DNA of 23,265 nucleotides from Lepidodermella squamata (lineage: Eukaryota > Animalia > Gastrotricha). The notes under the pieces were generated by a model that was not told the origin of the DNA, searched no databases, and saw only the letters and a list, made by a program, of their open reading frames with translations. Where the stretch lies: NCBI GenBank assembly GCA_047495785.1, contig JBLDXI010000137.1, positions 1-23,265 of the forward strand. Reading direction: 5' to 3'. Positions 1,673 through 23,265 of this stretch are shown here, piece after piece; the first letter of the stretch is position 1; each line of letters starts with the position of its first letter. A program made the position numbers and the translations under genes.

Positions 1673-3475
1673 ATGTCTTTATTATCCAGAGTTTTACCGG
1701 CTCCTATTCACGAGAAGAAGTCGGCGCCTCCCCCGCCGGCTGTCGAGAAGCCTACTTCTTCAGCTTTGATCTCGCGGTTGACGGCGCCACCTTACGGTTC
1801 CCGAGAGGGTTGGATTCCTCGCAAGCAAGAGGTTTGTTACAAATTTTAATTTGCTGACCCTTTTAAATCTGTCCTACTTTGCAGGATTATGGTGATGGAG
1901 GAGCCTACCCAGAATGTCATGTTGCCCAGTTTCCATTGGGCATGGGCCAAGTTGCGAGTACTTCCAACGCTTTGCAGGTTCAACTCGATGCTGAAGGAAA
2001 CATAAAATATGACGCTCTTCTGCGCCAAGGGAAAAGCAAAGACGTTGTCGTGTATTCAAAGTTCAGTGATCTTCTACCAAAAAATTTGGAAGATGAGGAT
2101 GGTTTGGAGAAACCAGGTGAAGAGGATATTCAGGAAGCTACAGAAAAGACTAGAGCCGCTCTGGAGGAGCTTGTACATTCAAAAATTGCTGCATCTATGC
2201 CTGTAAAAGTGGCTGAAAAGACCGCTCCTGCGCAATACGTGCGATACACTCCCTCTCAGCAATCAGTGGCATTTAACAGTGGAGCAAAGCAACGGATCAT
2301 TCGAATGGTGGAAGTTCAGAGAGATCCTATGTCTCCACCTCGTTTCAAAATCAATAAGAAATTGCCTCGAGGACCACCCTCCCCTCCTGCGCCTGTGATG
2401 CACTCACCTCCTCGAAAAGTTACCCAAAAGGAGCAACAAGATTGGAAAATCCCGCCGTGTATCTCGAATTGGAAAAACGCTAGAGGTTACACCATTCCTC
2501 TCGACAAGCGTCTAGCTGCTGATGGTCGTGGTTCACAACAACCTGGAATTAACGAAAACTTCGCCAAAGTCGCCAACGCTTTGGAAATCGCGAGTCGAAT
2601 GGCGCGAGAAGGTGTTGAAGCTCGCGCCAATGTCGAAAAGAAAATGGCTCAAAAGGTGAAAGAAAAGAAGGAGCAGGAGCTCAGGCTGCTGGCTCAAAAA
2701 GCGCGTGACGAACGTGCAGGCATCAGAGCCGTTGCATCCGCAGTTGGCGATGAAGATGACGAAGCCAGGGCTCGTGACCAGTTGCGCAAAGAGCGCGAGA
2801 AGGAACGCCAACGCGACCGTAATATTGCTCGAGCTGCACCTGATAAGCGGTTCGTTCCTATTTTCTACTTCGTTTAAGTTATTGCTCCATTTTTTCTCTT
2901 TCAGGAATATGCTGGAACGCGAGCGAGATCGTGATATTAGTGAAATGATTGCCCTGGGCGTTCCCAATCCGGGTCAACAGAAGTCTTTCGAATCAGAATT
3001 TGACCAGAGGTTGTTCAATAAGACCCGTGGCATGGACGCTGGTTTTGGTGATGAAGATGGCTACAACGTCTACGACAAGGCCTGGCGTGACGAAAAGGAG
3101 TTCAGCTCCAATATTTACCGTCCATCTAAAGGCAATGATAACGATATATACGGTGAAGAGCTCGAGAAACTCGTCAGCGCCGGTACTACCTCGCGTTTCA
3201 TGCCTGAAAAAGGTTTCAGTGGCGCCTCGGGCGAGAAGGGAGACTCGCGACGCCGCGAGGGTCCCGTTCAATTCGAACGCCAGGACAATGACGATCCTTT
3301 CGGCCTCAATAAGTTCTTGCAAGAGGCCAAAACCGGTGGTACTGATAATCGCCAATCGTCATCTGGTGGCGAGAAGCGAGACCGTGATCGATCCGACGAC
3401 CGTGGTCGGGGTGCTGCTCCAAGCAGTTCTCGCGGCGACGACAGCCGTAGCAGCAAGAAGTCTCGCCGAGACTGA
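1673..3475 (+). CDS. SNW1: SNW domain-containing protein 1 (SKIP/Prp45 spliceosome factor); exons 1673-1831, 1885-2849, 2905-3475; 564 aa
   Basis: Spliced translation MSLLSRVLPAP...PPYGSREGWIPRKQE|DYGDGGAYPECHVAQFPLGMG...YVRYTP...PRGPPSPPAPVMHSPPRK...WKIPPCISNWKNARGYTIPLDKRLAADGRG...RDISEMIALG...FDQRLFN...GPVQFE. It includes the SNW signature. GT-AG introns 1832-1884 (53 bp) and 2850-2904 (55 bp) join the ORF-track pieces in frame. Confidence 0.97.
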
Positions 3476-3571
3476 AAATCCGGATGTTCTTTTCTTTTTA
3501 TCACTCATAGTGTAATATGTTTAACCATTATCAGCGGGACACTTTTTGTTGTTTACAAGTTCATGAGAAAA

Positions 3572-3577
3572 AATAAA
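3572..3577 (+). terminator. Putative polyadenylation signal (AATAAA) of SNW1
   Basis: First AATAAA ~100 nt after the SNW1 stop, followed by T/GT-rich sequence (ctttattgttttt). Confidence 0.6.
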
Positions 3578-3599
3578 ACGATGAATTGGACTTTCTAGC

Positions 3600-3605
3600 T
3601 TTATT
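3600..3605 (-). terminator. Putative polyadenylation signal (AATAAA on minus strand) of UGDH
   Basis: TTTATT on +; the only canonical minus-strand hexamer I found between the UGDH stop (4241) and SNW1. Confidence 0.45.
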
Positions 3606-4240
3606 GTTTTTCCAAACTTTATATAATTTGACGTTAACTGGAGTTTTCAACCGCGCGATAAAGGAAACAATTGAGATTGATAGGCTCAACAAATAATTAT
3701 AGCAATCTTTGGCTGGGCTAAAGCACAAAACCCGCGGACGGCAAAAAACGATTTTTCAACCTTCTCTGCAAAAATAAACGCAGACGAAGCAACTCGATAA
3801 GACAACCACAAACGGCATTATTGTTTGGAGTTTAGCGAAGTTCGAAAATGCGACACATCAAAATAAATAGTAAAAGGAATAGTAAACATCTTACATCGCA
3901 GCACCGCGTGAGCAAATGGGAAGGATACATCCATATATTATCATTATCAATTACGTAGTTTCCAATGGCAATTACAGTATTTCGAAATAAAAACACGGCA
4001 ATAAATAATAAGTTTCCAAGAATCAAACTAAACTTTCAGCTAACCGGGCGCTATGAAACGATTTGTTTGGCGCTAGTTTTTGTAAAACAATGCAAGACAG
4101 TATGGCAAATCGGCCAGCTAGGCACTATTTAAAAAGGAGATGACAAGAGAAAGATTCAATGACTTTCTTGTTCAGCTTCCAAAGCGCAAGAAAAAAAACA
4201 CTTCAAAGTTAACTACCAAAAACAACACGTTTTTGATTAA

Positions 4241-5920
4241 TCAATGGTGGATAGCATGAGGTGGTGTAGGTAGCGAGGTTTGGGCATGACCGTTTTTCGC
4301 ACCATTTGTGGGCGATGGGAACATGATGCGTTTCCCGACAACTTCAACGTGAAACCCAAGGTTGATCAGGGCCTCGTGATCAAGAATGAGTCGTCCGTCG
4401 AAAACAAACGCTGGTTTGGCCATTTGTCCGTAAATTTTGGCGTAGTCTAGCTTTTTGAATAAATCCCATTCGGTGCAGATCAAAATTGCGTGGGCGCCGA
4501 CTGCCGCTTCGTACGGGTCGCTAGCAATGTGAACATTCGCTCGAACGTGGTCAGGCCGGTCGCAGTGGTACGGGTTAGCGAGGTCGTCCATGATTTGAGC
4601 TTCGCGAGTCAGGGGGTCGTAAATTGTCAGAATAGCGCCTTCGTCCAAAAGCTGACGAGCGACGTAAATGCTGCTGGATTCACGCGTGTCTGCCGTGTCT
4701 TTCTTGAACGCAAAACCGAACAACGCCAGTCGTTTGCCACTGACGCTACCAAATAGTCGATCAACGACTCGGTTAGCAAATCGGCGGCGTTGGTAATCAT
4801 TCATCTGAAAAATAGTCAATAGTGAAACAAAATAGTCCTTGATCTGCTTCAAACTAACCTCGACAACTTGGAGCCAATAATTGGCAACTTCAGGCAGATT
4901 CAGGGATTCAGCAATATATACCAAGCTGAGCAGATCTTTTTGGAAACAACTGCCACCGAAACCAACGCTGGCCTGTAAGAACTTTGACCCGATTCGCGTG
5001 TCAGTTCCAACGGCATACGAAACCTGCTTCACGTCAGCACCCGTAGCCTCGCAAAGTGCCGATATAGCGTTGATACTGGAGATTCGTTGTGCTAGGAATG
5101 CATTAGCGGCAAGTTTAGAAAGCTCGCTAGACCACGTTGACATGGTGATGATTCTATCAGATGGCACCCACTTCTCGTAAATGTACTTCCGCAATGAAGC
5201 AACAGCACTGCGTCCAGCAGGTGTTTCATCGCCCCCGATTAGCACACGGTCGGGTTCAATTAAATCACGAACAGCAGTGCCTTCAGCCAAAAATTCTGGG
5301 TTTGACAACACTTGGAAACTAACTCCGTTGCTTTTAATCGAGTAAGTCCCATTTACAGGGCCGTCGTGATGTCCATTTCCGTTGCCATTCAGCGAAACGG
5401 CATTAGTGCGAAGGATGTAAGCGATACTTTCCGCCGCCTTGACTGGCACCGTGCTTTTCTCAACCACAATCTTAGAAATGCGGCCATTTTCGTCGGAAAC
5501 TACCGATGAAGCTATCATGCGAGCAGCTTCTTCGACAAAACGCAGATCAGGAGCGCGACCTTTTCCGCGGCCATGCATTTTCGTCGGTGTATTGACGCAA
5601 ATGAAGATCAACTCGGCCTCTCGAATCGCCTTTTGAATTTCGGTAGAAAAGAACAAGTTTTTGTTACGGTATTCAGCAACGATTTCAGCAAGGCCGGGTT
5701 CGAAAATCGGAAGTTTAGAGCAGTCCGGACTGTTCCATTGTGCGATTCTTTCGGCTGAAGCGTCGACGACAGTCACGGTAACATCAGGACACTTCGAGGC
5801 GATTACAGCGCAAGTGGGGCCGCCAACATAACCAGCTCCAATGCAGCAGATATGGCGTATAGGAGTTATTTCGCTCAGCGGAACTTGACTAGTTTGCAGA
5901 AAATCGCCACCACTTGCCAT
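4241..5920 (-). CDS. UGDH: UDP-glucose 6-dehydrogenase; coding exons 5920-4859 and 4804-4241; 541 aa after removing a 54-bp intron
   Basis: Rossmann motif [62 protein letters not shown], catalytic [34 protein letters not shown]. The ORF-track segment [18 protein letters not shown] is a gttagt...ttttcag intron (4805-4858). Confidence 0.97.
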
Positions 5921-6678
5921 CTTTTATCATAAAATCAACCTACGAAAAATGAAAATTCCCATCATCAATGGTTTACTTATTTTCAATTGCGAAAATGTAA
6001 AAGTATAGTAATAATGGTAATAATTACTGGTTTCAAGATGTCATCATCTTCATCGTGATATTATTATCTCAATATTAATATATATTTATATAGAACAGAC
6101 TGGCGTTGTCAAGATAAAAACGAAGATGACATTGCCGACTTCTCAATGTCATTTTTCACCGTTTCTGCAGAGCAATGATACGAAGAACAAAAACAAATCG
6201 ACTACGTAAATCGTACGAATAGCAGTTGTAGAACAACAGGCACACATGTTCATGGCAGCCTCTGTTGATTCATTGCAAAGAAAAACGGACCGTCGCGCAA
6301 CATCGGCAGTTTAAAAATGGATGTATTTGGTGCATCTAATCAAAAATAGTTAGCTGAACTCGACGTCACGATTAAGGAAGTAAAGAATAATTGAGAGATT
6401 ATGATACCGCGACAACAAACCAAGCATCCGACAAGAATTAAGACGAATAGGAAGATAGGATATTAGGATGAAATATACATATTTCGAAGATTTGAATCAA
6501 TATTACACTAGCGCTGTATTCTATCTGAGGTGTAAAAAATGAAGTGACAACTCATGATGACATTCTGCGCCGCAGTAATAATACAAACCAAGGAGAGAAA
6601 TTTGTAATTTGAAAGACCGCATGTGCCGCTTCATTTCCTTTGCCAACAGCAAAACAATTATTTACTAGATATACGGGG

Positions 6679-8187
6679 CTATGAATTCGAAGAATCGATT
6701 CGCTTTAGAAGCCATCGACCTGTTTGAAGCGCCGAAATGGGTATTTTACTCTGTTGAGCAGTATCAAGATTTCGTAGCACGATCTCGCCCCCGGCAATTT
6801 TCCATAATTGAGAATGTTCCACTGACTTGGAATTTGGACGAGTGACAGCTGAAAATTAGGTTAAAGATAATTCAATAAATTCAAATTATCGATTTGAACT
6901 TGCCTATATCGTCCCCGATACTGAAGCACTGAGAGTCGTAAAAAAGTTTGCCATCAGAAGACACGCGGACTTTTTTCGAGGAAGAATGAGAGATGCTTTG
7001 GTTCACGCCATGTCCATTGACTACAGGAGCACCGTGTTTTTGATCTGACTGCCGCAGGGCATGAGCTATCTCCACCCAGTCATCCATGATATCTTGGTCA
7101 CGAAGCAAATAGACTATGTATGGTCCTGAGACAACAGTTGGTTTTTTCAATCCGGTGGAATGCGAACTGTCGTCTTTAGCAGTAATTGTCTGCCGCAACC
7201 GATGCCGCATAGGCGATGATGCATTAATCAACTCTTCCGCTTGAGGCGACTTGGCACGGCGCTTCACCTGTTTAACAACGGTAACTGTCTTCAGCTCAGC
7301 AACCTTGTCGCTTGCTGTTTTAGCTCGTTTAAGGAGTCCGCTTATTACACATCTCGTGAGAGTCGTCTGAGCTTCTATTGTTGCACGGACTAAGTCACCG
7401 ATCGTGGGATCGCACAGTTTTGCTCGTTTAGCTTTCAGCACGTCCCGCTCTGATTGAATACTGGCGATTTTGGCATTCAACTCATCTCGCATAGAACACA
7501 ACAACATATCCCTCTCCTCCTAAGAAAATGAAATACAAATGATAATAAATGCATTTGTGATAACCAGCTTTACTCACTGCAAGAGTCAAGTCCACCACCG
7601 TTTTATCACACTCGAGGTTCCATTTGAGATTATGAAGATGCAGCTCCCTCCATACTTCGACATTTTCTATTTGATTACTCATCTCTTTATCGTACCTTTC
7701 AAATGCTTGAACATATTCAGGTAAGCGATCTTCATTCAAAGCCAGTAAATTGTCATCGAGAGCCCCAAGTTTCTCGGTCATTAAACTGTTAAAAGGAAAA
7801 GTAATTCATAGCAAAAACAGAGAATAAAACTTACATGTCTCTCGCAGACGCAAAGTGCTGCTCCAATTCAAACATATCATCGGCATATTCATGCCTTTTT
7901 ACTTCGGCTTCGTGCTCGTCAAAGTCTGCCAAATTGATTCGCTCATCCTCATCATCAGATGGTGCATTGCTACCAGAATCGCTGGATGCCGACGAATGGC
8001 AAGGGGAATATGGAAATCTTAGGCCGACTGCTTGATACCGATCATCGGCCATTGCGAGACCATCAGGTGTCATGTCACCTGTGTATCTGACGTCGACCAT
8101 GCGACCTTCATCGAAAGGCGTGGCGGCAGTGAAGTCAGAGTTTGGTGTGTCGCCGGGATATCTTTTGCGTTTCGCTTGAATACTCAT
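6679..8187 (-). CDS. BRMS1L: BRMS1/BRMS1-like (Sds3 family, Sin3-HDAC subunit), left copy; exons 8187-7835, 7785-7578, 7519-6904, 6848-6679; 448 aa
   Basis: Acidic N-terminus, coiled coil (EVKRHEYADDMFELEQHF), BRMS1 motif KKPTVVSGPYIVYLLRDQDIMDDW, and C-terminal capped-Tudor-like region DGKLFYD...SKIPISALQTGRWLLKR. Introns are 49, 58 and 55 bp; the last is GC-AG. Confidence 0.88.
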
Positions 8188-9288
8188 AACTCAACAATTC
8201 TGATCAATACAGAAAACAAGCCAGGCGAATAAAACTTCAATCAAGAATGTTTTTATCAAGCACTTAAGCACAGGGAAAAGTCAGATATTCGCAATAAGTG
8301 CTCGACAGCAATAAGTTCTTCTCGCTAACAGAGGAGATTTCATTGAATGAATGAATTTACTATTTCAGCAGAACGGTTGAAAACGCCAGCTTCAGCCATA
8401 CCATTTACTACACAACTTTCACTAGCCTTTCGCTACACATATTGCACTGGATACTGAACTAGAAAGTAAAGGCTTTGTCCTGTAGCGCTGAGGTCGCTGG
8501 CAGTTGTGTGTGGTTTTACTTGAAAAGAAAAATAACCTGGAATAGTACCCTCTGTCTCTTCTAAATAATTTGATTATTTTTTGCCCTCATAAATTTAAAA
8601 TCAAAATAATTTTTTATTCCAAAGTAGTCTATATTATTTTTATTATACGTGACAATTTTCTATGAGGCGGGGAATTCAATTCGAAAACGCGACCCACCGA
8701 CTGGATTTAGGTTATGCCTCTAGCTGGATTATAGTTCTGAATTCTGAAGGTACTCAAATTATGCAATTAATAATTCAGCCTATATGGTAGCTGGCTAGTA
8801 ACAATGGGTAATTGGCGCTCGGTGCTGAATATTAGTCCATACGGTTTATTGTTTACATTTTTTGTGGTCACATACGCTGTCAACTGATCGGAAGTAAGTT
8901 ATCGTCGTGCCAAGTAGTTCTCCTTTGAAAGATGTTATTGGTGTCGAAGTTGATCTTTTATCCATTAAAGCTAGCCCGAAATTGATAATATTAATTGCTT
9001 GCTGAAAATTCTACAGCCGTCAAGCTATGGCTTGTTCCAGAAGCCAGAAGCCCGAGTGTTGTTTGAGTTTGCATGTCTTCTTGTGTGACCTGATTGATTC
9101 AAAGTTTGATAATCAGATTTTCCCTTCGACTTACTTCTTCAAGATGAAGTATGTTCGTTAGTTTTCTTTCGAGAAGGGAATTCGATTTACATAACTGTTT
9201 CCTTTATCACTTGATATTTGAACTTTGGTAGTTTTAGTTGTTTAGGTTTATCGGGGTTCATTACACCCTCCACAGTTAATTGAACTAG
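8188..9288. promoter_or_regulatory. Putative bidirectional promoter and 5' UTRs between divergent BRMS1L and CEP192 genes
   Basis: 1.1 kb between head-to-head start codons, with an AT-rich core at ~8560-8660. Candidate 5' UTR introns on + are 8894-9016 (gtaagt...ctacag) and 9149-9245 (gtatgt...tttag). Confidence 0.6.
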
Positions 9289-12200
9289 ATGAGCGCGGCC
9301 GCCTCCGATCCAGCGGATTTCCTAAGACTGAGCAGTGGTAGGCGCGATTTTTAGTTGAATAATTTTTCACCATCGTATTTTATTACAAGGACCGCTTAAC
9401 GGCAAGTCAAATGACTTCATCAACAATGACGGCCTGGATATCGATTATGTAGGCGAATTATTGCTTGTTAATAATTGGTTTGTTCATATAATATTGATTG
9501 ATGCTTTTAGGATGATGAAGACGATGGTCCTCCGGCCTTGCAAATGAGCAATGAGGAACTCGTGGCGCTGCAATCTCGTTTTCGGTTAGAATGCGATAAT
9601 GGTTCCGATTCGGGTAATTCTTTTTCAGAGGCTCAACTGTATTACTTTAACCATCATGATATTTGTAGATGACAGCGACGAAGAAGTCGAAGTTCCTGCG
9701 GTTAGTAAGCCCACAATTTCCGTCAATGGTCTTCCGGCTGATAGCCGGCTAACATCCGTGAAGTCCATCACGCCTTCCAGTTGCACTTCGGCGAACAATC
9801 GACCATACGATGGTTAACAATATAAATTTCATTATTTGCTTCAACTTAATATCTTTCGAAAACTAGATTCCTCATGTTTCCCAACTGACTCGATGATCCT
9901 TGAAAATAAGACCATTTACGAGAATATGGTAAATTTATGCCTGCACGCAACACATTTTATTTCAAAATTTGTTATTTTGCTAGCTTCATGATGACCCTGC
10001 AAACGAGACCAGCGTTGACAAATGGCAAGCTGTAAATCGACCAAAATATATCTCTCGCCCGGATGGATGGAATTTTGCCAGGTCAAATGATTTAGTGCAA
10101 ATGACTCCCGAAGAGTATTTGGCTCTCCGGTCTGAACCAATCGGCTCATTAGGTGGAAACAACAATCTGGTATTGAATTTTCATTGAATTTGTTGAAAAA
10201 TGAATGCGTTGCTTCTTTAGACTGCTTTCGAAATGGCTGGCTTGTTGCCGTCCAACTCTCCAGCTTCTTCGACTTCACCAACTGAATGCAACGATAAGAA
10301 GCCATCGCCTATACCTCCTCAACCGCCTAAAAGTACCGCCGATGTTAAACCAGTCACAGAGGCGCCGGATGTGAGTGTAAATATCGAATATCTGCTTCAA
10401 CCAAGCCAGCCTGTCGGTGATACAACAATGGATCAAACCAGAGTGGATCAAGCTTCCCCGACGCCTCAAGTATCGGCTGCCCAACAATCAACGAAGATAG
10501 CAGATTCAAATAGCAAAGATGACACTCGCTTATCGTCAAACAGAGTAATGGCTACCCTGGACTGTTTTTCTAGTCTTTTATCCTTTTCTTTCTTTAGCTT
10601 CCCGACAGTGGTCGTGATACCGATCGGCAAAGCCCCACCGCTTCTGAAACAGCTAGCTACCGCTCTAATCATTCGAGTAGCAGTGTTAGTTTCAGTTTCA
10701 ATAACGGCAGTGCGATTGCCGACGCCACTGACCCTGACTTGGCGGCAGTCGATGCTATGCTTGAAATGTATGATGCGGATGTCGACCCCGATGAGTTGGC
10801 CGAACACATCATGATGCGATTCGGGGTGAACCCGCAACGACCTGCCAGTACGAGCGCTCTTTTTCGCGATCAAGACGAATCGCTATTACGTCCGCCTAAC
10901 CGAGGCGGCGCTTTGTCACTTGCCAGTGTTGTTTCTAGCACTCCGAAGGCCGCGCCTAACCAGAAGAACGGCTCGCGACCCGGCTCAGCGCAATCATCAG
11001 CCTCGCGCAAAGTTGACACGACCACCTCATCTCAAGTAACCCTCGTAAGTTTACCGCAAGTTTGTCACGCGCAATCACGTGTCATTCACCTGCGCTCTTT
11101 TAGGAAAACGTGTCTGCCGGCCGGGCGAGTAATGAATCGCATAACAATGGTGGCGAAAATCGGATTAGCGCGCCCTCGCCGCGCAGTTCGAACTCAACTG
11201 TGACAAGCGGCGGCGGCGGCGGCTTTGTGAAACCGGCTAGACCAAGTGGTGGCAATGAAAACATCGAAAAGAATATCCAAGCTAAAAATAGCAACAAAGC
11301 ATCCCCAAATCCGTTGACGCAGTCAAACTTGTCGCTTATTTCGTCGTTCGATGCATCCAGCGTATCTGAATATGGACCACTACTCACGCCAATGGCTGAT
11401 AAAGGGCCTTTCATCCGACTGGAATGGGATAAACTTGCAATTGACATGAAAGAGCCGGTTTACGTCGGTCAGACGCAAGATTTGACGCTAACTGCAAAAA
11501 ATACGGGCAGGTTATGGGTTCAATTAAGCGCGACATTGCAAAACCCGAAAATTGATGGAAATCAAACCGGTGGACCACGAGGTCTTCACGTTTTGAATTC
11601 AACTGTTGTTGTAGAGCCGAATGCGAGCGGCACTTTTCGGCTTCGTTTCTCGCCGGGAGATCCCGGATTTTACTCGGCAAATATCGACATTTTTGCCTGT
11701 GTTGTTGGGTCAGTTGTTGAAGACTCGCGAACGCTACCGCCAATTCCGTTCTCAGCCGATGTCCGCTTACCCGCTGTCGACTTTTTCATACCAGGCCAAC
11801 AGATATGCGATTTTGGCGCCTTACCTGCCGGGGCTAGTAAGCGCATGGTTTGTTCATTACGTTTCCAGCCACCCTCTTCAGTGACCCCGGCCTCGTCCAG
11901 CTTCAACATTGACGTCCCGATTGTTGTAACGATTCGACCTGAATCAGCGTGGCGTTGTTTCCATTTTCTGCCGACTACGGGCTCGAATACCGAGGCTCTA
12001 GCCAAAAGTAAATCGATTACTAACGCTCCAGCTCCTTTATACGGCGCAGGTCATGCCACGAAGCTGTACCTATCTCCGATTCACCAACAACACGATTTCG
12101 TGGTGTGTTTCACCGCTCGTTATGACATTGAGCTATCGCCGAACCAGCAAGGCCTTGACATAAACGAGGCTGAATTAGTCGCCCAAACTGATTCGACGCC

Positions 12201-15200
12201 GCCTCGACAATTGTCGGTTGTACCGCTGAGGGCAGGGGTTGGAATTGTTTCGATTAAGGCGGTTGGCCTTGACCAAAACAGCGATGATTCGACTACGCTG
12301 AGAATGTCGACCCAAATCGCGAATACGATTACTCGCACTTTTTTCCTCGTTAATTCTGGATCGATTGGGGTTGATATTACGACAGCCATCACTTCATCGC
12401 CGACTACTCAATGCGCAGACCAGCCGGATCTTGGAAATGTGAAGATGTTTTCCGTCCAGCCGAGTCAGTTCACGTTGTTGCCAAAGCAAAAAATGCAAAT
12501 CAGCGTTAAATTTGAGCCGTTTGGGCTGGGTGCAAATGAAATGTGCGCTGGTTTCCTGAGTTTCTACACCGACCCGCCGCAAAGTGGAGCGCCCGGTCAA
12601 TTGCCCGCGCTTGACGTTTCGCTAATCGGCCTGGTAACTCCGGCCCCTGTTGAGCAAATGTCATCGAATCGAGGATCAGTTTCCTCGTCCTCATTGCCTG
12701 GCAGTGCGCATTCGACCCCGGGCTCGCAGATAATGGCGCTGGATTCGAGGCAGAATTCGCAACAGCGGCCGGGATTTGCGAGCAACTCTGGCAGTGAAAG
12801 TGCGAATAGCTCTGCGTCGTCGACCAATAGCCGTCGTACACTTGTTACCAGCCATCAACGAGTCGTATGGTGGGGCGTCGATCCTGGTCAGCAAATTGAA
12901 CAAGTAAGTGGTTTTCATATTTTTCCAAGCAAGTGGGTATTTTTAGGCTAAAATCACGCATTGGTTATCATTTAACAGTCAGAGTAAATTTGAGAGTTGG
13001 ACGTTAACCCGAAATATTTCCGGATTTTAGGCTGAAATTGGGTGGGTTCGTTTATTACTTGCATTTTCTGTTACCGAAAAACTCGAAAATTCGAGTGTGA
13101 CAAATTGGATTTATATCAACCAATTTTACAATTATTTTCAATAGATTGTCAATTTGCGAAATGTTGGCTCGGACGAAGTCAGTGTTCGAATTTCTATTCG
13201 AGACCACAATGCCGATCCTCAACAGCCAGCGTTCGTGCTCGCTGGGTCGACCTCACTCGCCGCCCCTCTTCTAGCCACCCTACCAGGCGCGTCCGACTTC
13301 CCAATGCGGATCATCTTCCGAGCCCAGCCGCAACACCAAAGTCGAGTCGCCATCGCAAAAATGCAGATCAAGGTGCTAGCATCTGGCGCCGGGTCTGTCC
13401 CGCCCGGTCTCAAGTTCTGCATACCGCTATTCGGCGCCGTTGGAACTGCCGCCATGTCTGCTGAGGGCGCGACTCTTCGCACAACCAGTGCCGGTCACTA
13501 CTACGCAATAATCGGAACAGTACCTGTCGGAGTTCGCCGGTCAGTGCGGCTCACTCTGAAAAACAACGGCTCGAGAAACGCGTTTTTCACCGCGTTGCCG
13601 TTCGCTGATATGAGCTGCACGCAGCGTTTGGGCCACTCAAAACTAGTCTGCACGCCACCTCAAGCCTGTTTGACGCCGAATGAAACCGTTGAACTGGCTG
13701 TTGATCTCTATGTCAGTGATCGAGAGGCTGCGTTATGCGCCGAGCGGTCTTACATCGTCGCGTGTCTGCAAATCGTGTTTGGCGATAACGATTTGCGGGT
13801 TATGGCAGGTCGCGCCCTGTCCACGATGAAGCCGACTGAAATCCGCAAGTTGCTGGACGAAACTGCCATGGAGCTGATTCGAGGCGGCTCAGCGGCGACT
13901 GGCGACGAATTGCCGCGAAATATGTCCGGCAATCTAGCTCAGACAGAAGCGTGGCCCGAGCATTTACGGTTGTTTTCTCGCCATTGCCGGCGGTTGTACG
14001 TGGCGCTGGTCGGCGAACGGACGTCAAATTCCGAGGCTAAGGGTGGCAGCGATTTCGATGAAGAAACTTTGCAGCATACGATGTTGCTGGACGATACTCA
14101 AGCGACAATCATGTTCCCACCGCCGATTATGAATGCCGAACGCGGCTTGAACTCGATAGCCAGCTTGGTGGAACAACGGTCTGGTTCCAAGTGAGTTTTT
14201 CTCAGCTTCTTATCTGAATCCCAGTGGATGCCCTAAATTATAGGTTTCAGCATACGATTTCCCAAAAATATGCATTTTTAGGCTGGATTTATGAATTTTT
14301 ATCTTCTCACTTGGTCTTCAATTTTCTATCTATTTTTCAGCTCCCAACTGCCCCGGGTTCCGATTGCGGCTGCCCCATCGTTGCCCACTGTCTACGACTC
14401 GCCGAATTCTCAACGCAACTCGTCGAGCTTCCAACACTCGCCAGCTCATGGAATCCGCCTGCTACCCAGCGAATTGCTCCTGACTGCCCTATCAGACTCG
14501 CGGGCGATGATGCTGATCAACGACACATCGTCACCAACCGATTTCGAAGCGGAATGGGCAGCGCATATTCTCATTGTTGAACCGCCGAAAGGGACGCTGC
14601 CTTCGAACGGCACTGCTACCATCAACGTGAGACTAGCACCTGGAGCTGCTGCTTTCGTCGATTCGGCGCAACAGCAATGGGTAGGCCGGGGTCGGAGTCA
14701 GAACTGCATCAGGCAGCCGGTTGGAAAGCGTTGTCCGAGTTCATTTGAGTTCGTCAGTTCAAACTTCGAATAACATGCCGCCGCCGCCGAGTATTCCGAA
14801 CTCAGCTCAACGGGCTAGGATGATGCAGGCGAGCAGGAACGAACCGGTTGTTCAAATAGTCTTCGGATCACGTGACTGCCCGCACCCGCCGGCTGCTCGT
14901 TTGGATTTCGGAAAAATCCAGCTATCGTCCGATCAGATACAACGAAAATTGGGCCTGCGGCTTGAAAATGACCAGCCTTTCCAAGTTTCGTGGCAAATGG
15001 AGGAGTTGAGTGCCTACGCGCTGGCTAGTCTGCCTGGTTCTAACAGCGGGGCTCAAGTTCCGGCGGCGAATTCTGCGAATCGGTGTGTTCCATCGATATT
15101 TTCGTTTATTCCGAATAAAAGCGGCATTTTGGCGCCAAATGGCGGGCAAGTGACGTTGAAATGCGTTTTCCAACCGCCGTCGACGAAGCAATCGCAAGAT

Positions 15201-15605
15201 ATCAACTATTTGCAGCACTTTCTGCTGACAATCAAGGGTACGACGGGCTGGACGGCTGAGACGAGGATTTCGGCGGTCGCGAGTCTTGTTACCTCGAATG
15301 CGTCTGTCAACCAATCAGTGGCGAATAGCACGAATTTGTCGATGAGCATGGCTGATCAGTCGCAAATGAGCCGCGTTTCGAATTCGTCGACTTGCTCTGC
15401 AGCGCCGTTGAGTGCGAGCCGCCGGCCGGCGTTCGGCCAGAGGATTTCGCGGTGCCTTGTTTGCCCGGGCGAAAAACACGAATTCCAGAAAGTTGTCAGA
15501 CCAGGTGAGAAGATAAAAATTCATAAATCCAGCCTAAAAATGCATATTTTTGGGAAATCGTATGCTGAAACCTATAATTTAGGGCATCCACTGGGATTCA
15601 GATAA
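9289..15605 (+). CDS. CEP192: CEP192/SPD-2-like centrosomal scaffold, 3'-truncated; exons 9289-9337, 9390-9448, 9511-9613, 9669-9812, 9867-9928, 9984-10169, 10221-10544, 10598-11044, 11104-12903, 13145-14190, 14341-15504; ~1794 aa to the breakpoint, one frameshift at 14688-14691
   Basis: Ten GT-AG introns join in frame. A disordered acidic/Ser-rich N-terminus is followed by tandem ASH/PapD-like domains with CEP192-like motifs: AKNTGRLWVQL, DFGALPAG, LVNSGSIGV, VVWWGVDPGQ..IVNLRN, LKNNGSRNAF and VFGD (Spd2 domain), FEAEWAAHILIVEPPKG, FQVSW..IFSFIP. Unspliced read-through past 15504 stops at 15605 inside the inverted arm. Confidence 0.82.
14311..15504. other. Unique 1194-bp spacer (loop) of the palindrome; contains the last visible CEP192 exon
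   Basis: Exact arm pairing ends at 14310/15505. The first mismatch is 14311 t versus 15504 g. Confidence 0.95.
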
Positions 15606-15620
15606 GAAGCTGAGAAAAAC

Positions 15621-18600
15621 TCACTTGGAACCAGACCGTTGTTCCACCAAGCTGGCTATCGAGTTCAAGCCGCGTTCGGCATTCATAATCGGCGGTGGGA
15701 ACATGATTGTCGCTTGAGTATCGTCCAGCAACATCGTATGCTGCAAAGTTTCTTCATCGAAATCGCTGCCACCCTTAGCCTCGGAATTTGACGTCCGTTC
15801 GCCGACCAGCGCCACGTACAACCGCCGGCAATGGCGAGAAAACAACCGTAAATGCTCGGGCCACGCTTCTGTCTGAGCTAGATTGCCGGACATATTTCGC
15901 GGCAATTCGTCGCCAGTCGCCGCTGAGCCGCCTCGAATCAGCTCCATGGCAGTTTCGTCCAGCAACTTGCGGATTTCAGTCGGCTTCATCGTGGACAGGG
16001 CGCGACCTGCCATAACCCGCAAATCGTTATCGCCAAACACGATTTGCAGACACGCGACGATGTAAGACCGCTCGGCGCATAACGCAGCCTCTCGATCACT
16101 GACATAGAGATCAACAGTCAGTTCAACGGTTTCATTCGGCGTCAAACAGGCTTGAGGTGGCGTGCAGACTAGTTTTGAGTGGCCCAAACGCTGCGTGCAG
16201 CTCATATCAGCGAACGGCAACGCGGTGAAAAACGCGTTTCTCGAGCCGTTGTTTTTCAGAGTGAGCCGCACTGACCGGCGAACTCCGACAGGTACTGTTC
16301 CGATTATTGCGTAGTAGTGACCGGCACTGGTTGTGCGAAGAGTCGCGCCCTCAGCAGACATGGCGGCAGTTCCAACGGCGCCGAATAGCGGTATGCAGAA
16401 CTTGAGACCGGGCGGGACAGACCCGGCGCCAGATGCTAGCACCTTGATCTGCATTTTTGCGATGGCGACTCGACTTTGGTGTTGCGGCTGGGCTCGGAAG
16501 ATGATCCGCATTGGGAAGTCGGACGCGCCTGGTAGGGTGGCTAGAAGAGGGGCGGCGAGTGAGGTCGACCCAGCGAGCACGAACGCTGGCTGTTGAGGAT
16601 CGGCATTGTGGTCTCGAATAGAAATTCGAACACTGACTTCGTCCGAGCCAACATTTCGCAAATTGACAATCTATTGAAAATAATTGTAAAATTGGTTGAT
16701 ATAAATCCAATTTGTCACACTCGAATTTTCGAGTTTTTCGGTAACAGAAAATGCAAGTAATAAACGAACCCACCCAATTTCAGCCTAAAATCCGGAAATA
16801 TTTCGGGTTAACGTCCAACTCTCAAATTTACTCTGACTGTTAAATGATAACCAATGCGTGATTTTAGCCTAAAAATACCCACTTGCTTGGAAAAATATGA
16901 AAACCACTTACTTGTTCAATTTGCTGACCAGGATCGACGCCCCACCATACGACTCGTTGATGGCTGGTAACAAGTGTACGACGGCTATTGGTCGACGACG
17001 CAGAGCTATTCGCACTTTCACTGCCAGAGTTGCTCGCAAATCCCGGCCGCTGTTGCGAATTCTGCCTCGAATCCAGCGCCATTATCTGCGAGCCCGGGGT
17101 CGAATGCGCACTGCCAGGCAATGAGGACGAGGAAACTGATCCTCGATTCGATGACATTTGCTCAACAGGGGCCGGAGTTACCAGGCCGATTAGCGAAACG
17201 TCAAGCGCGGGCAATTGACCGGGCGCTCCACTTTGCGGCGGGTCGGTGTAGAAACTCAGGAAACCAGCGCACATTTCATTTGCACCCAGCCCAAACGGCT
17301 CAAATTTAACGCTGATTTGCATTTTTTGCTTTGGCAACAACGTGAACTGACTCGGCTGGACGGAAAACATCTTCACATTTCCAAGATCCGGCTGGTCTGC
17401 GCATTGAGTAGTCGGCGATGAAGTGATGGCTGTCGTAATATCAACCCCAATCGATCCAGAATTAACGAGGAAAAAAGTGCGAGTAATCGTATTCGCGATT
17501 TGGGTCGACATTCTCAGCGTAGTCGAATCATCGCTGTTTTGGTCAAGGCCAACCGCCTTAATCGAAACAATTCCAACCCCTGCCCTCAGCGGTACAACCG
17601 ACAATTGTCGAGGCGGCGTCGAATCAGTTTGGGCGACTAATTCAGCCTCGTTTATGTCAAGGCCTTGCTGGTTCGGCGATAGCTCAATGTCATAACGAGC
17701 GGTGAAACACACCACGAAATCGTGTTGTTGGTGAATCGGAGATAGGTACAGCTTCGTGGCATGACCTGCGCCGTATAAAGGAGCTGGAGCGTTAGTAATC
17801 GATTTACTTTTGGCTAGAGCCTCGGTATTCGAGCCCGTAGTCGGCAGAAAATGGAAACAACGCCACGCTGATTCAGGTCGAATCGTTACAACAATCGGGA
17901 CGTCAATGTTGAAGCTGGACGAGGCCGGGGTCACTGAAGAGGGTGGCTGGAAACGTAATGAACAAACCATGCGCTTACTAGCCCCGGCAGGTAAGGCGCC
18001 AAAATCGCATATCTGTTGGCCTGGTATGAAAAAGTCGACAGCGGGTAAGCGGACATCGGCTGAGAACGGAATTGGCGGTAGCGTTCGCGAGTCTTCAACA
18101 ACTGACCCAACAACACAGGCAAAAATGTCGATATTTGCCGAGTAAAATCCGGGATCTCCCGGCGAGAAACGAAGCCGAAAAGTGCCGCTCGCATTCGGCT
18201 CTACAACAACAGTTGAATTCAAAACGTGAAGACCTCGTGGTCCACCGGTTTGATTTCCATCAATTTTCGGGTTTTGCAATGTCGCGCTTAATTGAACCCA
18301 TAACCTGCCCGTATTTTTTGCAGTTAGCGTCAAATCTTGCGTCTGACCGACGTAAACCGGCTCTTTCATGTCAATTGCAAGTTTATCCCATTCCAGTCGG
18401 ATGAAAGGCCCTTTATCAGCCATTGGCGTGAGTAGTGGTCCATATTCAGATACGCTGGATGCATCGAACGACGAAATAAGCGACAAGTTTGACTGCGTCA
18501 ACGGATTTGGGGATGCTTTGTTGCTATTTTTAGCTTGGATATTCTTTTCGATGTTTTCATTGCCACCACTTGGTCTAGCCGGTTTCACAAAGCCGCCGCC

Positions 18601-20526
18601 GCCGCCGCTTGTCACAGTTGAGTTCGAACTGCGCGGCGAGGGCGCGCTAATCCGATTTTCGCCACCATTGTTATGCGATTCATTACTCGCCCGGCCGGCA
18701 GACACGTTTTCCTAAAAGAGCGCAGGTGAATGACACGTGATTGCGCGTGACAAACTTGCGGTAAACTTACGAGGGTTACTTGAGATGAGGTGGTCGTGTC
18801 AACTTTGCGCGAGGCTGATGATTGCGCTGAGCCGGGTCGCGAGCCGTTCTTCTGGTTAGGCGCGGCCTTCGGAGTGCTAGAAACAACACTGGCAAGTGAC
18901 AAAGCGCCGCCTCGGTTAGGCGGACGTAATAGCGATTCGTCTTGATCGCGAAAAAGAGCGCTCGTACTGGCAGGTCGTTGCGGGTTCACCCCGAATCGCA
19001 TCATGATGTGTTCGGCCAACTCATCGGGGTCGACATCCGCATCATACATTTCAAGCATAGCATCGACTGCCGCCAAGTCAGGGTCAGTGGCGTCGGCAAT
19101 CGCACTGCCGTTATTGAAACTGAAACTAACACTGCTACTCGAATGATTAGAGCGGTAGCTAGCTGTTTCAGAAGCGGTGGGGCTTTGCCGATCGGTATCA
19201 CGACCACTGTCGGGAAGCTAAAGAAAGAAAAGGATAAAAGACTAGAAAAACAGTCCAGGGTAGCCATTACTCTGTTTGACGATAAGCGAGTGTCATCTTT
19301 GCTATTTGAATCTGCTATCTTCGTTGATTGTTGGGCAGCCGATACTTGAGGCGTCGGGGAAGCTTGATCCACTCTGGTTTGATCCATTGTTGTATCACCG
19401 ACAGGCTGGCTTGGTTGAAGCAGATATTCGATATTTACACTCACATCCGGCGCCTCTGTGACTGGTTTAACATCGGCGGTACTTTTAGGCGGTTGAGGAG
19501 GTATAGGCGATGGCTTCTTATCGTTGCATTCAGTTGGTGAAGTCGAAGAAGCTGGAGAGTTGGACGGCAACAAGCCAGCCATTTCGAAAGCAGTCTAAAG
19601 AAGCAACGCATTCATTTTTCAACAAATTCAATGAAAATTCAATACCAGATTGTTGTTTCCACCTAATGAGCCGATTGGTTCAGACCGGAGAGCCAAATAC
19701 TCTTCGGGAGTCATTTGCACTAAATCATTTGACCTGGCAAAATTCCATCCATCCGGGCGAGAGATATATTTTGGTCGATTTACAGCTTGCCATTTGTCAA
19801 CGCTGGTCTCGTTTGCAGGGTCATCATGAAGCTAGCAAAATAACAAATTTTGAAATAAAATGTGTTGCGTGCAGGCATAAATTTACCATATTCTCGTAAA
19901 TGGTCTTATTTTCAAGGATCATCGAGTCAGTTGGGAAACATGAGGAATCTAGTTTTCGAAAGATATTAAGTTGAAGCAAATAATGAAATTTATATTGTTA
20001 ACCATCGTATGGTCGATTGTTCGCCGAAGTGCAACTGGAAGGCGTGATGGACTTCACGGATGTTAGCCGGCTATCAGCCGGAAGACCATTGACGGAAATT
20101 GTGGGCTTACTAACCGCAGGAACTTCGACTTCTTCGTCGCTGTCATCTACAAATATCATGATGGTTAAAGTAATACAGTTGAGCCTCTGAAAAAGAATTA
20201 CCCGAATCGGAACCATTATCGCATTCTAACCGAAAACGAGATTGCAGCGCCACGAGTTCCTCATTGCTCATTTGCAAGGCCGGAGGACCATCGTCTTCAT
20301 CATCCTAAAAGCATCAATCAATATTATATGAACAAACCAATTATTAACAAGCAATAATTCGCCTACATAATCGATATCCAGGCCGTCATTGTTGATGAAG
20401 TCATTTGACTTGCCGTTAAGCGGTCCTTGTAATAAAATACGATGGTGAAAAATTATTCAACTAAAAATCGCGCCTACCACTGCTCAGTCTTAGGAAATCC
20501 GCTGGATCGGAGGCGGCCGCGCTCAT
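15621..20526 (-). pseudogene. CEP192: Second, more truncated CEP192/SPD-2-like copy (exons 1-10 only, ending after the Spd2 domain region)
   Basis: Mirror of 9289-14194. Intron 10 is cut at 15505 before its acceptor, and without splicing AA|GTGA gives an immediate stop at 15621. One Ala/Thr difference at 16118. Confidence 0.78.
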
Positions 20527-21627
20527 CTAGTTCAATTAACTGTGGAGGGTGTAATGAACCCCGATAAACCTAAACAACTAAAACTACCAAAGTTCAAATA
20601 TCAAGTGATAAAGGAAACAGTTATGTAAATCGAATTCCCTTCTCGAAAGAAAACTAACGAACATACTTCATCTTGAAGAAGTAAGTCGAAGGGAAAATCT
20701 GATTATCAAACTTTGAATCAATCAGGTCACACAAGAAGACATGCAAACTCAAACAACACTCGGGCTTCTGGCTTCTGGAACAAGCCATAGCTTGACGGCT
20801 GTAGAATTTTCAGCAAGCAATTAATATTATCAATTTCGGGCTAGCTTTAATGGATAAAAGATCAACTTCGACACCAATAACATCTTTCAAAGGAGAACTA
20901 CTTGGCACGACGATAACTTACTTCCGATCAGTTGACAGCGTATGTGACCACAAAAAATGTAAACAATAAACCGTATGGACTAATATTCAGCACCGAGCGC
21001 CAATTACCCATTGTTACTAGCCAGCTACCATATAGGCTGAATTATTAATTGCATAATTTGAGTACCTTCAGAATTCAGAACTATAATCCAGCTAGAGGCA
21101 TAACCTAAATCCAGTCGGTGGGTCGCGTTTTCGAATTGAATTCCCCGCCTCATAGAAAATTGTCACGTATAATAAAAATAATATAGACTACTTTGGAATA
21201 AAAAATTATTTTGATTTTAAATTTATGAGGGCAAAAAATAATCAAATTATTTAGAAGAGACAGAGGGTACTATTCCAGGTTATTTTTCTTTTCAAGTAAA
21301 ACCACACACAACTGCCAGCGACCTCAGCGCTACAGGACAAAGCCTTTACTTTCTAGTTCAGTATCCAGTGCAATATGTGTAGCGAAAGGCTAGTGAAAGT
21401 TGTGTAGTAAATGGTATGGCTGAAGCTGGCGTTTTCAACCGTTCTGCTGAAATAGTAAATTCATTCATTCAATGAAATCTCCTCTGTTAGCGAGAAGAAC
21501 TTATTGCTGTCGAGCACTTATTGCGAATATCTGACTTTTCCCTGTGCTTAAGTGCTTGATAAAAACATTCTTGATTGAAGTTTTATTCGCCTGGCTTGTT
21601 TTCTGTATTGATCAGAATTGTTGAGTT
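20527..21627. promoter_or_regulatory. Mirror copy of the putative bidirectional promoter region
   Basis: Reverse complement of 8188-9288. Confidence 0.55.
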
Positions 21628-23136
21628 ATGAGTATTCAAGCGAAACGCAAAAGATATCCCGGCGACACACCAAACTCTGACTTCACTGCCGCCACGCCTT
21701 TCGATGAAGGTCGCATGGTCGACGTCAGATACACAGGTGACATGACACCTGATGGTCTCGCAATGGCCGATGATCGGTATCAAGCAGTCGGCCTAAGATT
21801 TCCATATTCCCCTTGCCATTCGTCGGCATCCAGCGATTCTGGTAGCAATGCACCATCTGATGATGAGGATGAGCGAATCAATTTGGCAGACTTTGACGAG
21901 CACGAAGCCGAAGTAAAAAGGCATGAATATGCCGATGATATGTTTGAATTGGAGCAGCACTTTGCGTCTGCGAGAGACATGTAAGTTTTATTCTCTGTTT
22001 TTGCTATGAATTACTTTTCCTTTTAACAGTTTAATGACCGAGAAACTTGGGGCTCTCGATGACAATTTACTGGCTTTGAATGAAGATCGCTTACCTGAAT
22101 ATGTTCAAGCATTTGAAAGGTACGATAAAGAGATGAGTAATCAAATAGAAAATGTCGAAGTATGGAGGGAGCTGCATCTTCATAATCTCAAATGGAACCT
22201 CGAGTGTGATAAAACGGTGGTGGACTTGACTCTTGCAGTGAGTAAAGCTGGTTATCACAAATGCATTTATTATCATTTGTATTTCATTTTCTTAGGAGGA
22301 GAGGGATATGTTGTTGTGTTCTATGCGAGATGAGTTGAATGCCAAAATCGCCAGTATTCAATCAGAGCGGGACGTGCTGAAAGCTAAACGAGCAAAACTG
22401 TGCGATCCCACGATCGGTGACTTAGTCCGTGCAACAATAGAAGCTCAGACGTTAATGGAGGGCAAGAAAATAAGCGGACTCCTTAAACGAGCTAAAACAG
22501 CAAGCGACAAGGTTGCTGAGCTGAAGACAGTTACCGTTGTTAAACAGGTGAAGCGCCGTGCCAAGTCGCCTCAAGCGGAAGAGTTGATTAATGCATCATC
22601 GCCTATGCGGCATCGGTTGCGGCAGACAATTACTGCTAAAGACGACAGTTCGCATTCCACCGGATTGAAAAAACCAACTGTTGTCTCAGGACCATACATA
22701 GTCTATTTGCTTCGTGACCAAGATATCATGGATGACTGGGTGGAGATAGCTCATGCCCTGCGGCAGTCAGATCAAAAACACGGTGCTCCTGTAGTCAATG
22801 GACATGGCGTGAACCAAAGCATCTCTCATTCTTCCTCGAAAAAAGTCCGCGTGTCTTCTGATGGCAAACTTTTTTACGACTCTCAGTGCTTCAGTATCGG
22901 GGACGATATAGGCAAGTTCAAATCGATAATTTGAATTTATTGAATTATCTTTAACCTAATTTTCAGCTGTCACTCGTCCAAATTCCAAGTCAGTGGAACA
23001 TTCTCAATTATGGAAAATTGCCGGGGGCGAGATCGTGCTACGAAATCTTGATACTGCTCAACAGAGTAAAATACCCATTTCGGCGCTTCAAACAGGTCGA
23101 TGGCTTCTAAAGCGAATCGATTCTTCGAATTCATAG
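21628..23136 (+). CDS. BRMS1L: BRMS1/BRMS1-like (Sds3 family), right copy; exons 21628-21980, 22030-22237, 22296-22911, 22967-23136; 448 aa
   Basis: Same motifs as the left copy. Introns gtaagt..aacag (21981-22029), gtgagt..cttag (22238-22295) and gcaagt..tttcag (22912-22966) keep the frame to TAG at 23134-23136. Confidence 0.9.
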
Positions 23137-23265
23137 CCCCGTATATCTAGTAAATAATTGTTTTGCTGTTGGCAAAGGAAATGAAGCGGCACATGCGGTC
23201 TTTCAAATTACAAATTTCTCTCCTTGGTTTGTATTATTACTGCGGCGCAGAATGTCATCATGAGT

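Follow-up and report, generated by a model that had tools for sequence, protein, structure and literature searches.

A ~16.7-kb inverted duplication in a Lepidodermella squamata contig is most probably an in-vitro fold-back chimera

The window analyzed here, the whole 23,265-nucleotide stretch of Lepidodermella squamata contig JBLDXI010000137.1 (assembly GCA_047495785.1), contains several genes, two of which occur a second time in an inverted copy that fills its right-hand part. Its features are listed below.

1..6549, no strand: left flank, unique and colinear, which holds the SNW/SKIP-domain gene and the UDP-glucose 6-dehydrogenase gene
1879-3475 (ORFs), plus strand: SNW/SKIP-domain gene (Pfam SKIP_SNW, 1.4e-68)
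4241-5920, minus strand: UDP-glucose 6-dehydrogenase gene (Pfam UDPG_MGDP_dh N, central and C domains)
6550..14310, plus strand: arm A, genuine genomic sequence with the BRMS1L-like gene (minus strand) and most of the CEP192-like gene (plus strand)
6881-8187, minus strand: BRMS1L-like gene, arm A copy, named as in the initial annotation
7347..7363, plus strand: adapter scar ACACATCTCGTGAGAGT, identical to the 3'-terminal bases of the PacBio barcoded adapter bcAd1003 (barcode bc1003 and its T overhang)
9599..15504, plus strand: CEP192-like gene, 5' and middle exons, truncated where an exon ends, at splice donor 15504|GT; its 5' limit is uncertain
14309..14317, plus strand: putative template-switch landing site ACTTGGTCT, inside intron 14191-14340
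14311..15506, plus strand: spacer, colinear genomic sequence with CEP192-like exons rather than a loop, tiled by contigs of all three sequencing runs
15498..15506, plus strand: putative take-off site AGACCAGGT, the 3' end of the nascent strand, at the chimeric junction 15506/15507
15507..23265, minus strand: arm B, most probably an artefactual reverse-complement copy of 6550-14308
16118, no strand: the single arm-to-arm substitution, T versus G at 13697 (Ala to Thr)
21628-22934, plus strand: BRMS1L-like gene, false arm B copy, the mirror of 6881-8187

The initial annotation had described the duplicated genes as a BRMS1L-CEP192 pair, and the second of these names held. Pfam places Cep192 domains D1, D2 and D3 in ORF 11110-12951, D4 and D5 in 13154-14194, and D6 in 14291-14773, such that D1-D6 are ordered along 11110-14773; D1, D3 and D5 exceed the Pfam curated cut-offs and D2, D4 and D6 fall slightly under them. 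On these matches the predicted CEP192 identity of the plus-strand gene is confirmed at the level of sequence. The BRMS1L name found no database counterpart, as the separate exon ORFs of this gene gave zero matches in Pfam (E up to 10), the ESM Atlas, a search of 5.8 billion proteins and the PDB; a C-terminal motif of the minus-strand gene at 6881-8187 is the only hint of a possible kinship with BRMS1/SDS3. An exact look-up of the UDP-glucose 6-dehydrogenase ORF retrieved zero records, and a homologue search with 14721-15504, directed at the colinear CEP192 3' end, returned nothing.

Self-comparison of the window revealed an inverted duplication that obeys the symmetry i+j=29815 with zero indels, in agreement with the earlier claim of a structure centered at 14907/14908 without net indel. 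A first pass yielded arms at 6550-14317 and 15498-23265 with 1,180 nt in between. The arms differ in three ways: (a) a 17-nt block at 7347-7363 versus 22452-22468, of equal length; (b) a G at 13697 versus a T at 16118, which replaces an Ala codon (GCT) of the CEP192-like ORF by a Thr codon (ACT); and (c) a T at 14311 versus a G at 15504. The inverted duplication is thereby confirmed as first described. Because the 14311/15504 mismatch belongs to a microhomology at the junction, the arms properly extend over 6550-14310 and 15505-23265, each 7,761 nt long and differing by one substitution and the 17-nt block, with ~1.19 kb of unique sequence in the middle and ~16.7 kb for the whole inverted structure. 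Arm B, which also yields a false second copy of the CEP192-like gene on the minus strand, reaches the last base of the window; position 6550 is thus fixed by that end and is no biological boundary. The T at 16118 probably reflects an error of copying or consensus calling that is confined to the chimeric molecule, and a G>A change at 13697 was absent among the variants listed for the DNA-like run described below, a list that is incomplete.

To place the duplication against sequencing data we used Logan contigs, in which rare variants are dropped and molecules cannot be counted, from three runs of three studies (X1, X2 and X3). Run X1 is deep, DNA-like and from the same organism, and contains 95% of the words sampled from 600-6500; it may itself be the run from which the assembly was made, and would then not be independent. 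Run X2 is RNA, as judged by a spliced joint from 14190 to 14341 (GT..AG). The second organism in X1's study has none of the window's words. The initial annotation had named three observations that would mark the structure as an artefact, namely an intact colinear CEP192 3' end elsewhere, poor support for the junction, and arms of single-copy depth, and at the contig level all three were found. Both X1 alleles pass colinearly over the boundary between arm A and the spacer (contigs at 14113-14374), and two X1 contigs, one per allele at ~48x each, depart from the window after 15506 into TCGCTTTTCTTTCATAACC. RNA-like contigs of the other two studies, two of X2 and one of X3, depart after 15510 into CTGTGAAGGAGAAGG, which leads in frame into the next exon (...VVRPGETVKEKVNLEN). 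The colinear continuation reads AGACCAGGT and then TCGCTTTTCTTTCATAACCTGACTATACAT, with the next exon beginning GTGAGACTGTGAAGGAGAAGG; neither the X1-type nor the X2/X3-type continuation (30 nt each) occurs anywhere in the window. In the three runs no contig spans 15506/15507, and all three continue otherwise. The stretch 15507-15672 is without any X1 contig, and the bin depths there are fully explained by contigs that stop at 15436 and 15506 and another that begins at 15673. The allele-specific word depth of X1 is 51.7 and 46.8 in the arm (14113-14374) versus 48.5 and 48.5 at the end of the spacer, which gives an arm:spacer ratio of ~1.07, not 2, for contig word depth as distinct from read depth. 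On the opposing side, GTGAGA is common to the RNA continuation and the beginning of arm B, a coincidence of 1/256 to 1/4096 that is not further explained.

These data bear directly on whether the window depicts a genuine germline palindrome, in which at least one haplotype of the animal would carry a very recent inverted copy of the BRMS1L-like/CEP192-like pair. Such a duplication would account for a structure that is present in the assembled sequence with arms that are 99.99% identical, and microhomology-mediated fold-back is known in vivo too. However, both X1 alleles run colinearly past 15506 at full depth, junction contigs number zero, and arm depth approximately equals spacer depth. Moreover, arm B has no outer end within the contig, the CEP192-like gene would be truncated though its RNA continues, and one arm carries an adapter scar. 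We consider a germline origin extremely improbable, and the gene-bearing palindrome that headed the initial annotation is not supported as a biological reading.

The scar, which goes unmentioned in the initial annotation, is the 17-nt block by which the arms differ. The 3' end of bcAd1003 matches 7347-7363 at 17/17 bases, the only such match in the window, with ~3e-6 expected by chance; section 41 of bioRxiv 10.1101/2023.02.19.526140 gives the sequence of the adapter, and the bc1003 barcode is also present in PMC11480859. The adapter bases replace exactly 17 natural bases within a coding exon, converting TLMEGKK to TTLTRCV, and the natural bases survive at the mirror site 22452-22468. An overwrite of this kind is the expected outcome when overlap coordinates determine where a read with an untrimmed end is placed. 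As a physical trace of the adapter, the scar directly attests a read boundary, the start of a HiFi read. From 7347 to the end of the window is 15,919 nt, approximately one HiFi read length, and one read (7347-23265) would carry the entire structure; no barcode was seen at the window's right-hand end.

The junction itself offers a route by which such a read could arise. Positions 14309-14317 are complementary to 15498-15506 over 9 nt, forming 8 Watson-Crick pairs and a G·T pair at 14311/15504 (P of at least 8/9, ~1e-4), and beyond 15506 the sequence continues as the reverse complement of the stretch that ends at 14308, which lies 1.19 kb back on the same strand. Such a 9-nt inverted microhomology is the signature of phi29/MDA inverted chimeras. 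The palindrome is best explained as an inverted chimera formed in vitro, in which a molecule folded back on itself, was sequenced as a HiFi read and was retained by the assembler, and we assign this reading a probability of roughly 0.93. The initial annotation had weighed an extremely young, a gene-converted and a non-biological origin, and its lean towards a phi29-amplification or fold-back-read artefact is supported. A nascent copy of the plus strand with its 3' end at 15506 would have been displaced in the course of strand-displacing synthesis, most likely by phi29 in multiple displacement amplification (MDA); this end would have re-annealed 1.19 kb upstream, at 14309-14317 of a single-stranded plus strand, and been extended back along that strand. 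The product would read as the genome up to 15506 and then, in reverse complement, from 14308 towards lower positions. After ligation of barcoded SMRTbell adapters, sequencing of the chimeric fragment would yield a read that begins at 7347 with an untrimmed barcode. The assembler may then have overlapped this read with a normal one, such that 17 adapter bases replaced 17 genomic ones, and the contig would afterwards have taken the chimeric path to its end. From circumstantial evidence we infer that phi29 in MDA was the polymerase and that an MDA-amplified single-animal library was the source.

The same junction could in principle have formed inside the animal, as a rare somatic or replication-error fold-back (a hairpin-capped break or a template switch) in one or a few cells that was sampled by chance. 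In this case the fold-back at the CEP192-like splice donor would have existed in a minority of cells and been picked up because a single animal was sequenced, rather than made by the amplification polymerase. A template-switch signature is common to in-vivo replication errors, and a single molecule cannot separate an in-vivo from an in-vitro origin. The priors, however, point the other way, as 60-70% of reads in MDA-HiFi libraries are chimeric, mostly inverted, versus 0.8% in bulk (10.64898/2026.06.11.730069). We regard a molecule formed in vivo as very unlikely, both as a general origin and as a fold-back at this particular splice donor.

A third account dispenses with a chimeric DNA molecule altogether and holds that the assembler mis-joined reads, or that a PacBio read passed round a hairpin whose adapter was missed. 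The adapter remnant in the contig does indicate imperfect read trimming, but the center of the structure is 1.19 kb of unique genomic, coding sequence rather than adapter, and the arms are unequal around the read start. A missed-adapter read was ruled out, given that no 12-mer of the SMRTbell loop occurs anywhere in the window. Likewise, an assembler mis-join via a natural inverted repeat was ruled out, the spacer having only weak 14-30-nt matches and no long inverted repeat able to give the overlap. As the 9-nt microhomology is too short to drive an assembler overlap, the junction must be present in at least one read. Taken together, this account is exceedingly improbable.

The second copy of both genes is almost certainly not part of the animal's genome; the structure is almost certainly not a real genomic feature, and its relevance lies in quality control rather than in biological importance. 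The published Lepidodermella squamata assembly was produced by REPLI-g MDA and HiFi sequencing (157 contigs, 122.8 Mb) on a flow cell shared with a second species, and its authors state that no chimeric contigs were detected (PMC11660948). If the source of the present contig is that published MDA-HiFi gastrotrich assembly, our finding contradicts this statement (PMC11660948). As it stands, the contig falsely duplicates two genes and truncates the CEP192-like gene model. The BRMS1L-like protein has six wrong amino acids because the adapter bases lie in an exon.

Genuine gene-bearing palindromes, such as the ampliconic palindromes of sex chromosomes and those made by fold-back gene amplification, have 2x arm depth, junctions represented by many molecules, and defined outer boundaries. 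The structure in the window resembles them in its near-identical, kilobase-scale, gene-containing arms and its unique spacer, whereas at the contig level doubled arm depth, a multi-molecule junction and a defined outer boundary are all unseen. The scar is similar to known bcAd1003 contamination of assemblies in its exact match to the adapter 3' stem (barcode and T overhang), and differs in that it overwrites 17 genomic bases with no insertion. A likeness is also found in the palindromic long reads obtained after whole-genome amplification (Pacasus, bioRxiv 10.1101/173872; tardigrade MDA-ONT, PMC13265396; MDA-HiFi benchmark, 10.64898/2026.06.11.730069), which are palindromes of read length that survive assemblers such as hifiasm and create false inversions and duplications; those studies used reference or read-level data, whereas ours used contigs of public runs. 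HiFi sequencing of MDA DNA gave thousands of false inversions with a mean of 1,493 bp that were kept by hifiasm (10.64898/2026.06.11.730069), and this mean of ~1.5 kb compares with 1.19 kb here. Inverted, intramolecular products reportedly account for more than 85% of MDA chimeras, and more than 70% are primed on 2-21 complementary nucleotides (Lasken & Stockwell 2007, PMC1855051). In the present case the product lies within a finished contig rather than a read, and the use of MDA is inferred. The structure nonetheless shares with the phi29 MDA inverted chimeras (PMC1855051) a short complementary priming site (9 nt here versus 2-21 nt), an intramolecular switch onto a complementary nearby copy, a kilobase-scale offset, and an arm-spacer-arm product.

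The initial annotation reported a giant palindrome duplicating a BRMS1L-CEP192 gene pair, and a repeat search together with a base-by-base check bore out the palindrome as observed in the window, including its centre at 14907/14908, its arms of ~7.76 kb and its middle of ~1.19 kb. The repeat search of the window returned one large inverted duplication, whose arm segments 7364-14317/15498-22451 and 6550-7346/22469-23265 are each 100% complementary. On the symmetry i+j=29815, the base-by-base check found no indels between the arms (arm A to the left of the spacer, arm B to its right) and three kinds of difference:

17-nt block, 7347-7363 versus 22452-22468
substitution, 13697 G versus 16118 T
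substitution, 14311 T versus 15504 G

The last base of arm B is the last base of the window, so the left limit at 6550 merely mirrors that end. We assign a probability of roughly 0.93 to the structure being a chimeric fold-back read retained in the assembly, and hence no real genomic feature. The window, whose introns are short, clearly belongs to an invertebrate and not to a human, and the following genes were located:

1879-3475, + strand, SNW/SKIP-domain gene
4241-5920, - strand, UDP-glucose 6-dehydrogenase
6881-8187, - strand, three-exon gene, putative BRMS1L (named so in the initial annotation)
up to 15504, + strand, CEP192-like gene encoding Pfam domains D1-D6 in sequential order

The 559-aa UDP-glucose dehydrogenase ORF, judged from its sequence, seems to include a short intron translated in frame, the putative read-through segment being 18 residues located between the central Pfam domain and the C-terminal one.

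The boundary between arm A and the spacer is crossed by contigs of both alleles in X1, a deep DNA-like run of the same organism (records 2 and 3, 14113-14374); this boundary is ordinary genome, and the break is on the right side. Across the junction at 15506/15507 the window reads ...GTTGTCAGACCAGGT followed by GAGAAGATAAAAATTC. Two X1 contigs leave the window there, continuing from ...CCAGGT with TCGCTTTTCTTTCATAACCTGACTATACAT (mutual agreement 0.88), and represent the two alleles at 48.5x each. X2, a run from another study, contains a spliced joint (14190->14341) with GT..AG ends and is therefore RNA. X2 and the RNA-like run X3, which belong to two other studies, contribute three contigs that proceed beyond 15510 with CTGTGAAGGAGAAGGTGAACTTGGAAAACC and keep the reading frame (...FQKVVRPGETVKEKVNLEN). 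Neither the X1 nor the X2/X3 continuation was found in the window; together with the in-frame RNA continuation, this identifies the GT after 15504 as a donor splice site in the CEP192-like gene. The intron and exon downstream of 15504 are located in another part of the genome. In the RNA contigs the following exon starts with GTGAGA, the first six bases of arm B after the junction (15505-15510), which is why X2 and X3 seem to match to 15510 rather than 15504; this sharing is probably a coincidence (1/256 to 1/4096).

In about a dozen short X2 contigs a position in arm A is joined to one in arm B on the same strand (13319-16603); the mirror images of the joined positions lie ~100 nt apart (e.g. 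13319->16603 and 13935->15778). None of these joints coincides with the junction seen in the window, and the contigs resemble small fold-backs or split placements of contigs that fit both arms. Two X2 contigs have opposite-strand joints (14596/14710 and 14640/14740) within a CEP192-like exon, and no strong inverted repeat was found at 14596-14740.

Depth in X1, which may be the very run from which the window was assembled, was read from Logan contigs; these lose rare variants and carry one mean word depth each. The bin 15412-15545 (depth 83) comprises a contig ending at 15436 (76.5) and two ending at 15506 (96.9 together), and the bin 15546-15679 (4.42) is due to the leading 7 nt of a contig that begins at 15673. 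These contigs account for the bin depths exactly, so X1 has no sequence on 15507-15672 and no contig bridging the junction. A real duplication would place the arm at double dose, which is not the case: allele-specific depths are 51.7 (window allele) and 46.8 over 14113-14374, which is mostly arm, versus 48.5 and 48.5 at the spacer end. The second allele differs from the window by ~1.5% in exons (13141-13866 and 14113-15470) and by ~6.5% plus indels in intron (14113-14374). Between 13180 and 13708 the 11 differences all lie multiples of 3 nt apart, and thus fall at third-codon positions. With both alleles at about equal depth (47-52x), this divergence indicates a highly heterozygous animal with purifying selection on both alleles.

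The sequence at the join suggests how the switch was primed. Eight of the nine bases of the take-off end AGACCAGGT (15498-15506) are complementary to the landing site ACTTGGTCT (14309-14317) within the intron 14191-14340, the ninth position being G·T (chance probability ~1e-4).

The 17-nt block at 7347-7363, ACACATCTCGTGAGAGT, is an adapter scar. Its bases 1-16 are the PacBio barcode bc1003, and 17/17 bases agree with the 3' end of bcAd1003, a barcoded hairpin adapter; this is the single match in the window even at <=3 mismatches (~3e-6 exact matches expected by chance). In SMRTbell molecules the adapter 3' end is ligated to the insert 5' end, so a read with an unclipped barcode begins with barcode, T and insert; this order is present at 7347, with the insert running right from 7364. 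The adapter ends ...GAGAGAT-ACACATCTCGTGAGAG-T (bioRxiv 10.1101/2023.02.19.526140, section 41), and bc1003 is also listed in PMC11480859. Exactly 17 natural bases are overwritten and are retained in the mirror arm, where the exon reads ...EAQTLMEGKKISG... versus ...EAQTTLTRCVISG... in the scarred arm. Such a same-length overwrite cannot be of biological or ligation origin; an assembler that positions a read according to the coordinates of its overlap and takes over its bases from the very first one would produce it. Neither the hairpin loop sequence nor a second barcode was found anywhere in the window. The stretch between 7347 and the end of the window measures 15,919 nt, which is typical of a HiFi read, and judging from this span one read may be the source of the whole fold-back. 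A non-chimeric read from 7347 could not extend past 15506 with consistent overlap.

The window probably derives from the published L. squamata assembly, built from REPLI-g MDA and HiFi reads (157 contigs, 122.8 Mb; PMC11660948). Those reads average 13.4 kb at 83x coverage, versus 15,919 nt from 7347 to the end and ~48x per allele in X1. X3 dates from 2014, and that paper names a 2014 public transcriptome; the 2024 study of X1 includes a second organism sharing 0 of the window's words, and the paper has C. elegans in the same study. One Sequel II cell was shared with C. elegans (PMC11660948), which required barcoded adapters and fits the bc1003 scar. Alvis found no chimeric contig in that assembly (PMC11660948); if it is the source, the window is a counter-example. 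The fold-back can serve to flag the assembly that holds the window for quality control.

Among HiFi reads of MDA products 60-70% are chimeric, false structural variants are mostly inversions (mean length 1,493 bp), and hifiasm retains them, so that its contigs contain misassemblies and false duplications (10.64898/2026.06.11.730069). Pacasus (10.1101/173872) and PMC13265396 also deal with palindromic reads obtained after whole-genome amplification. In the study of Lasken and Stockwell more than 85% of the MDA chimeras were inverted, intramolecular events were favoured, and >70% were primed on 2-21 complementary nt (PMC1855051). Five features of the window fit the phi29 MDA chimera model of these authors: its join is inverted and stays within one molecule, the offset is of the order of kilobases, a short complementary stretch primed the junction, and the arms are identical except for one substitution.
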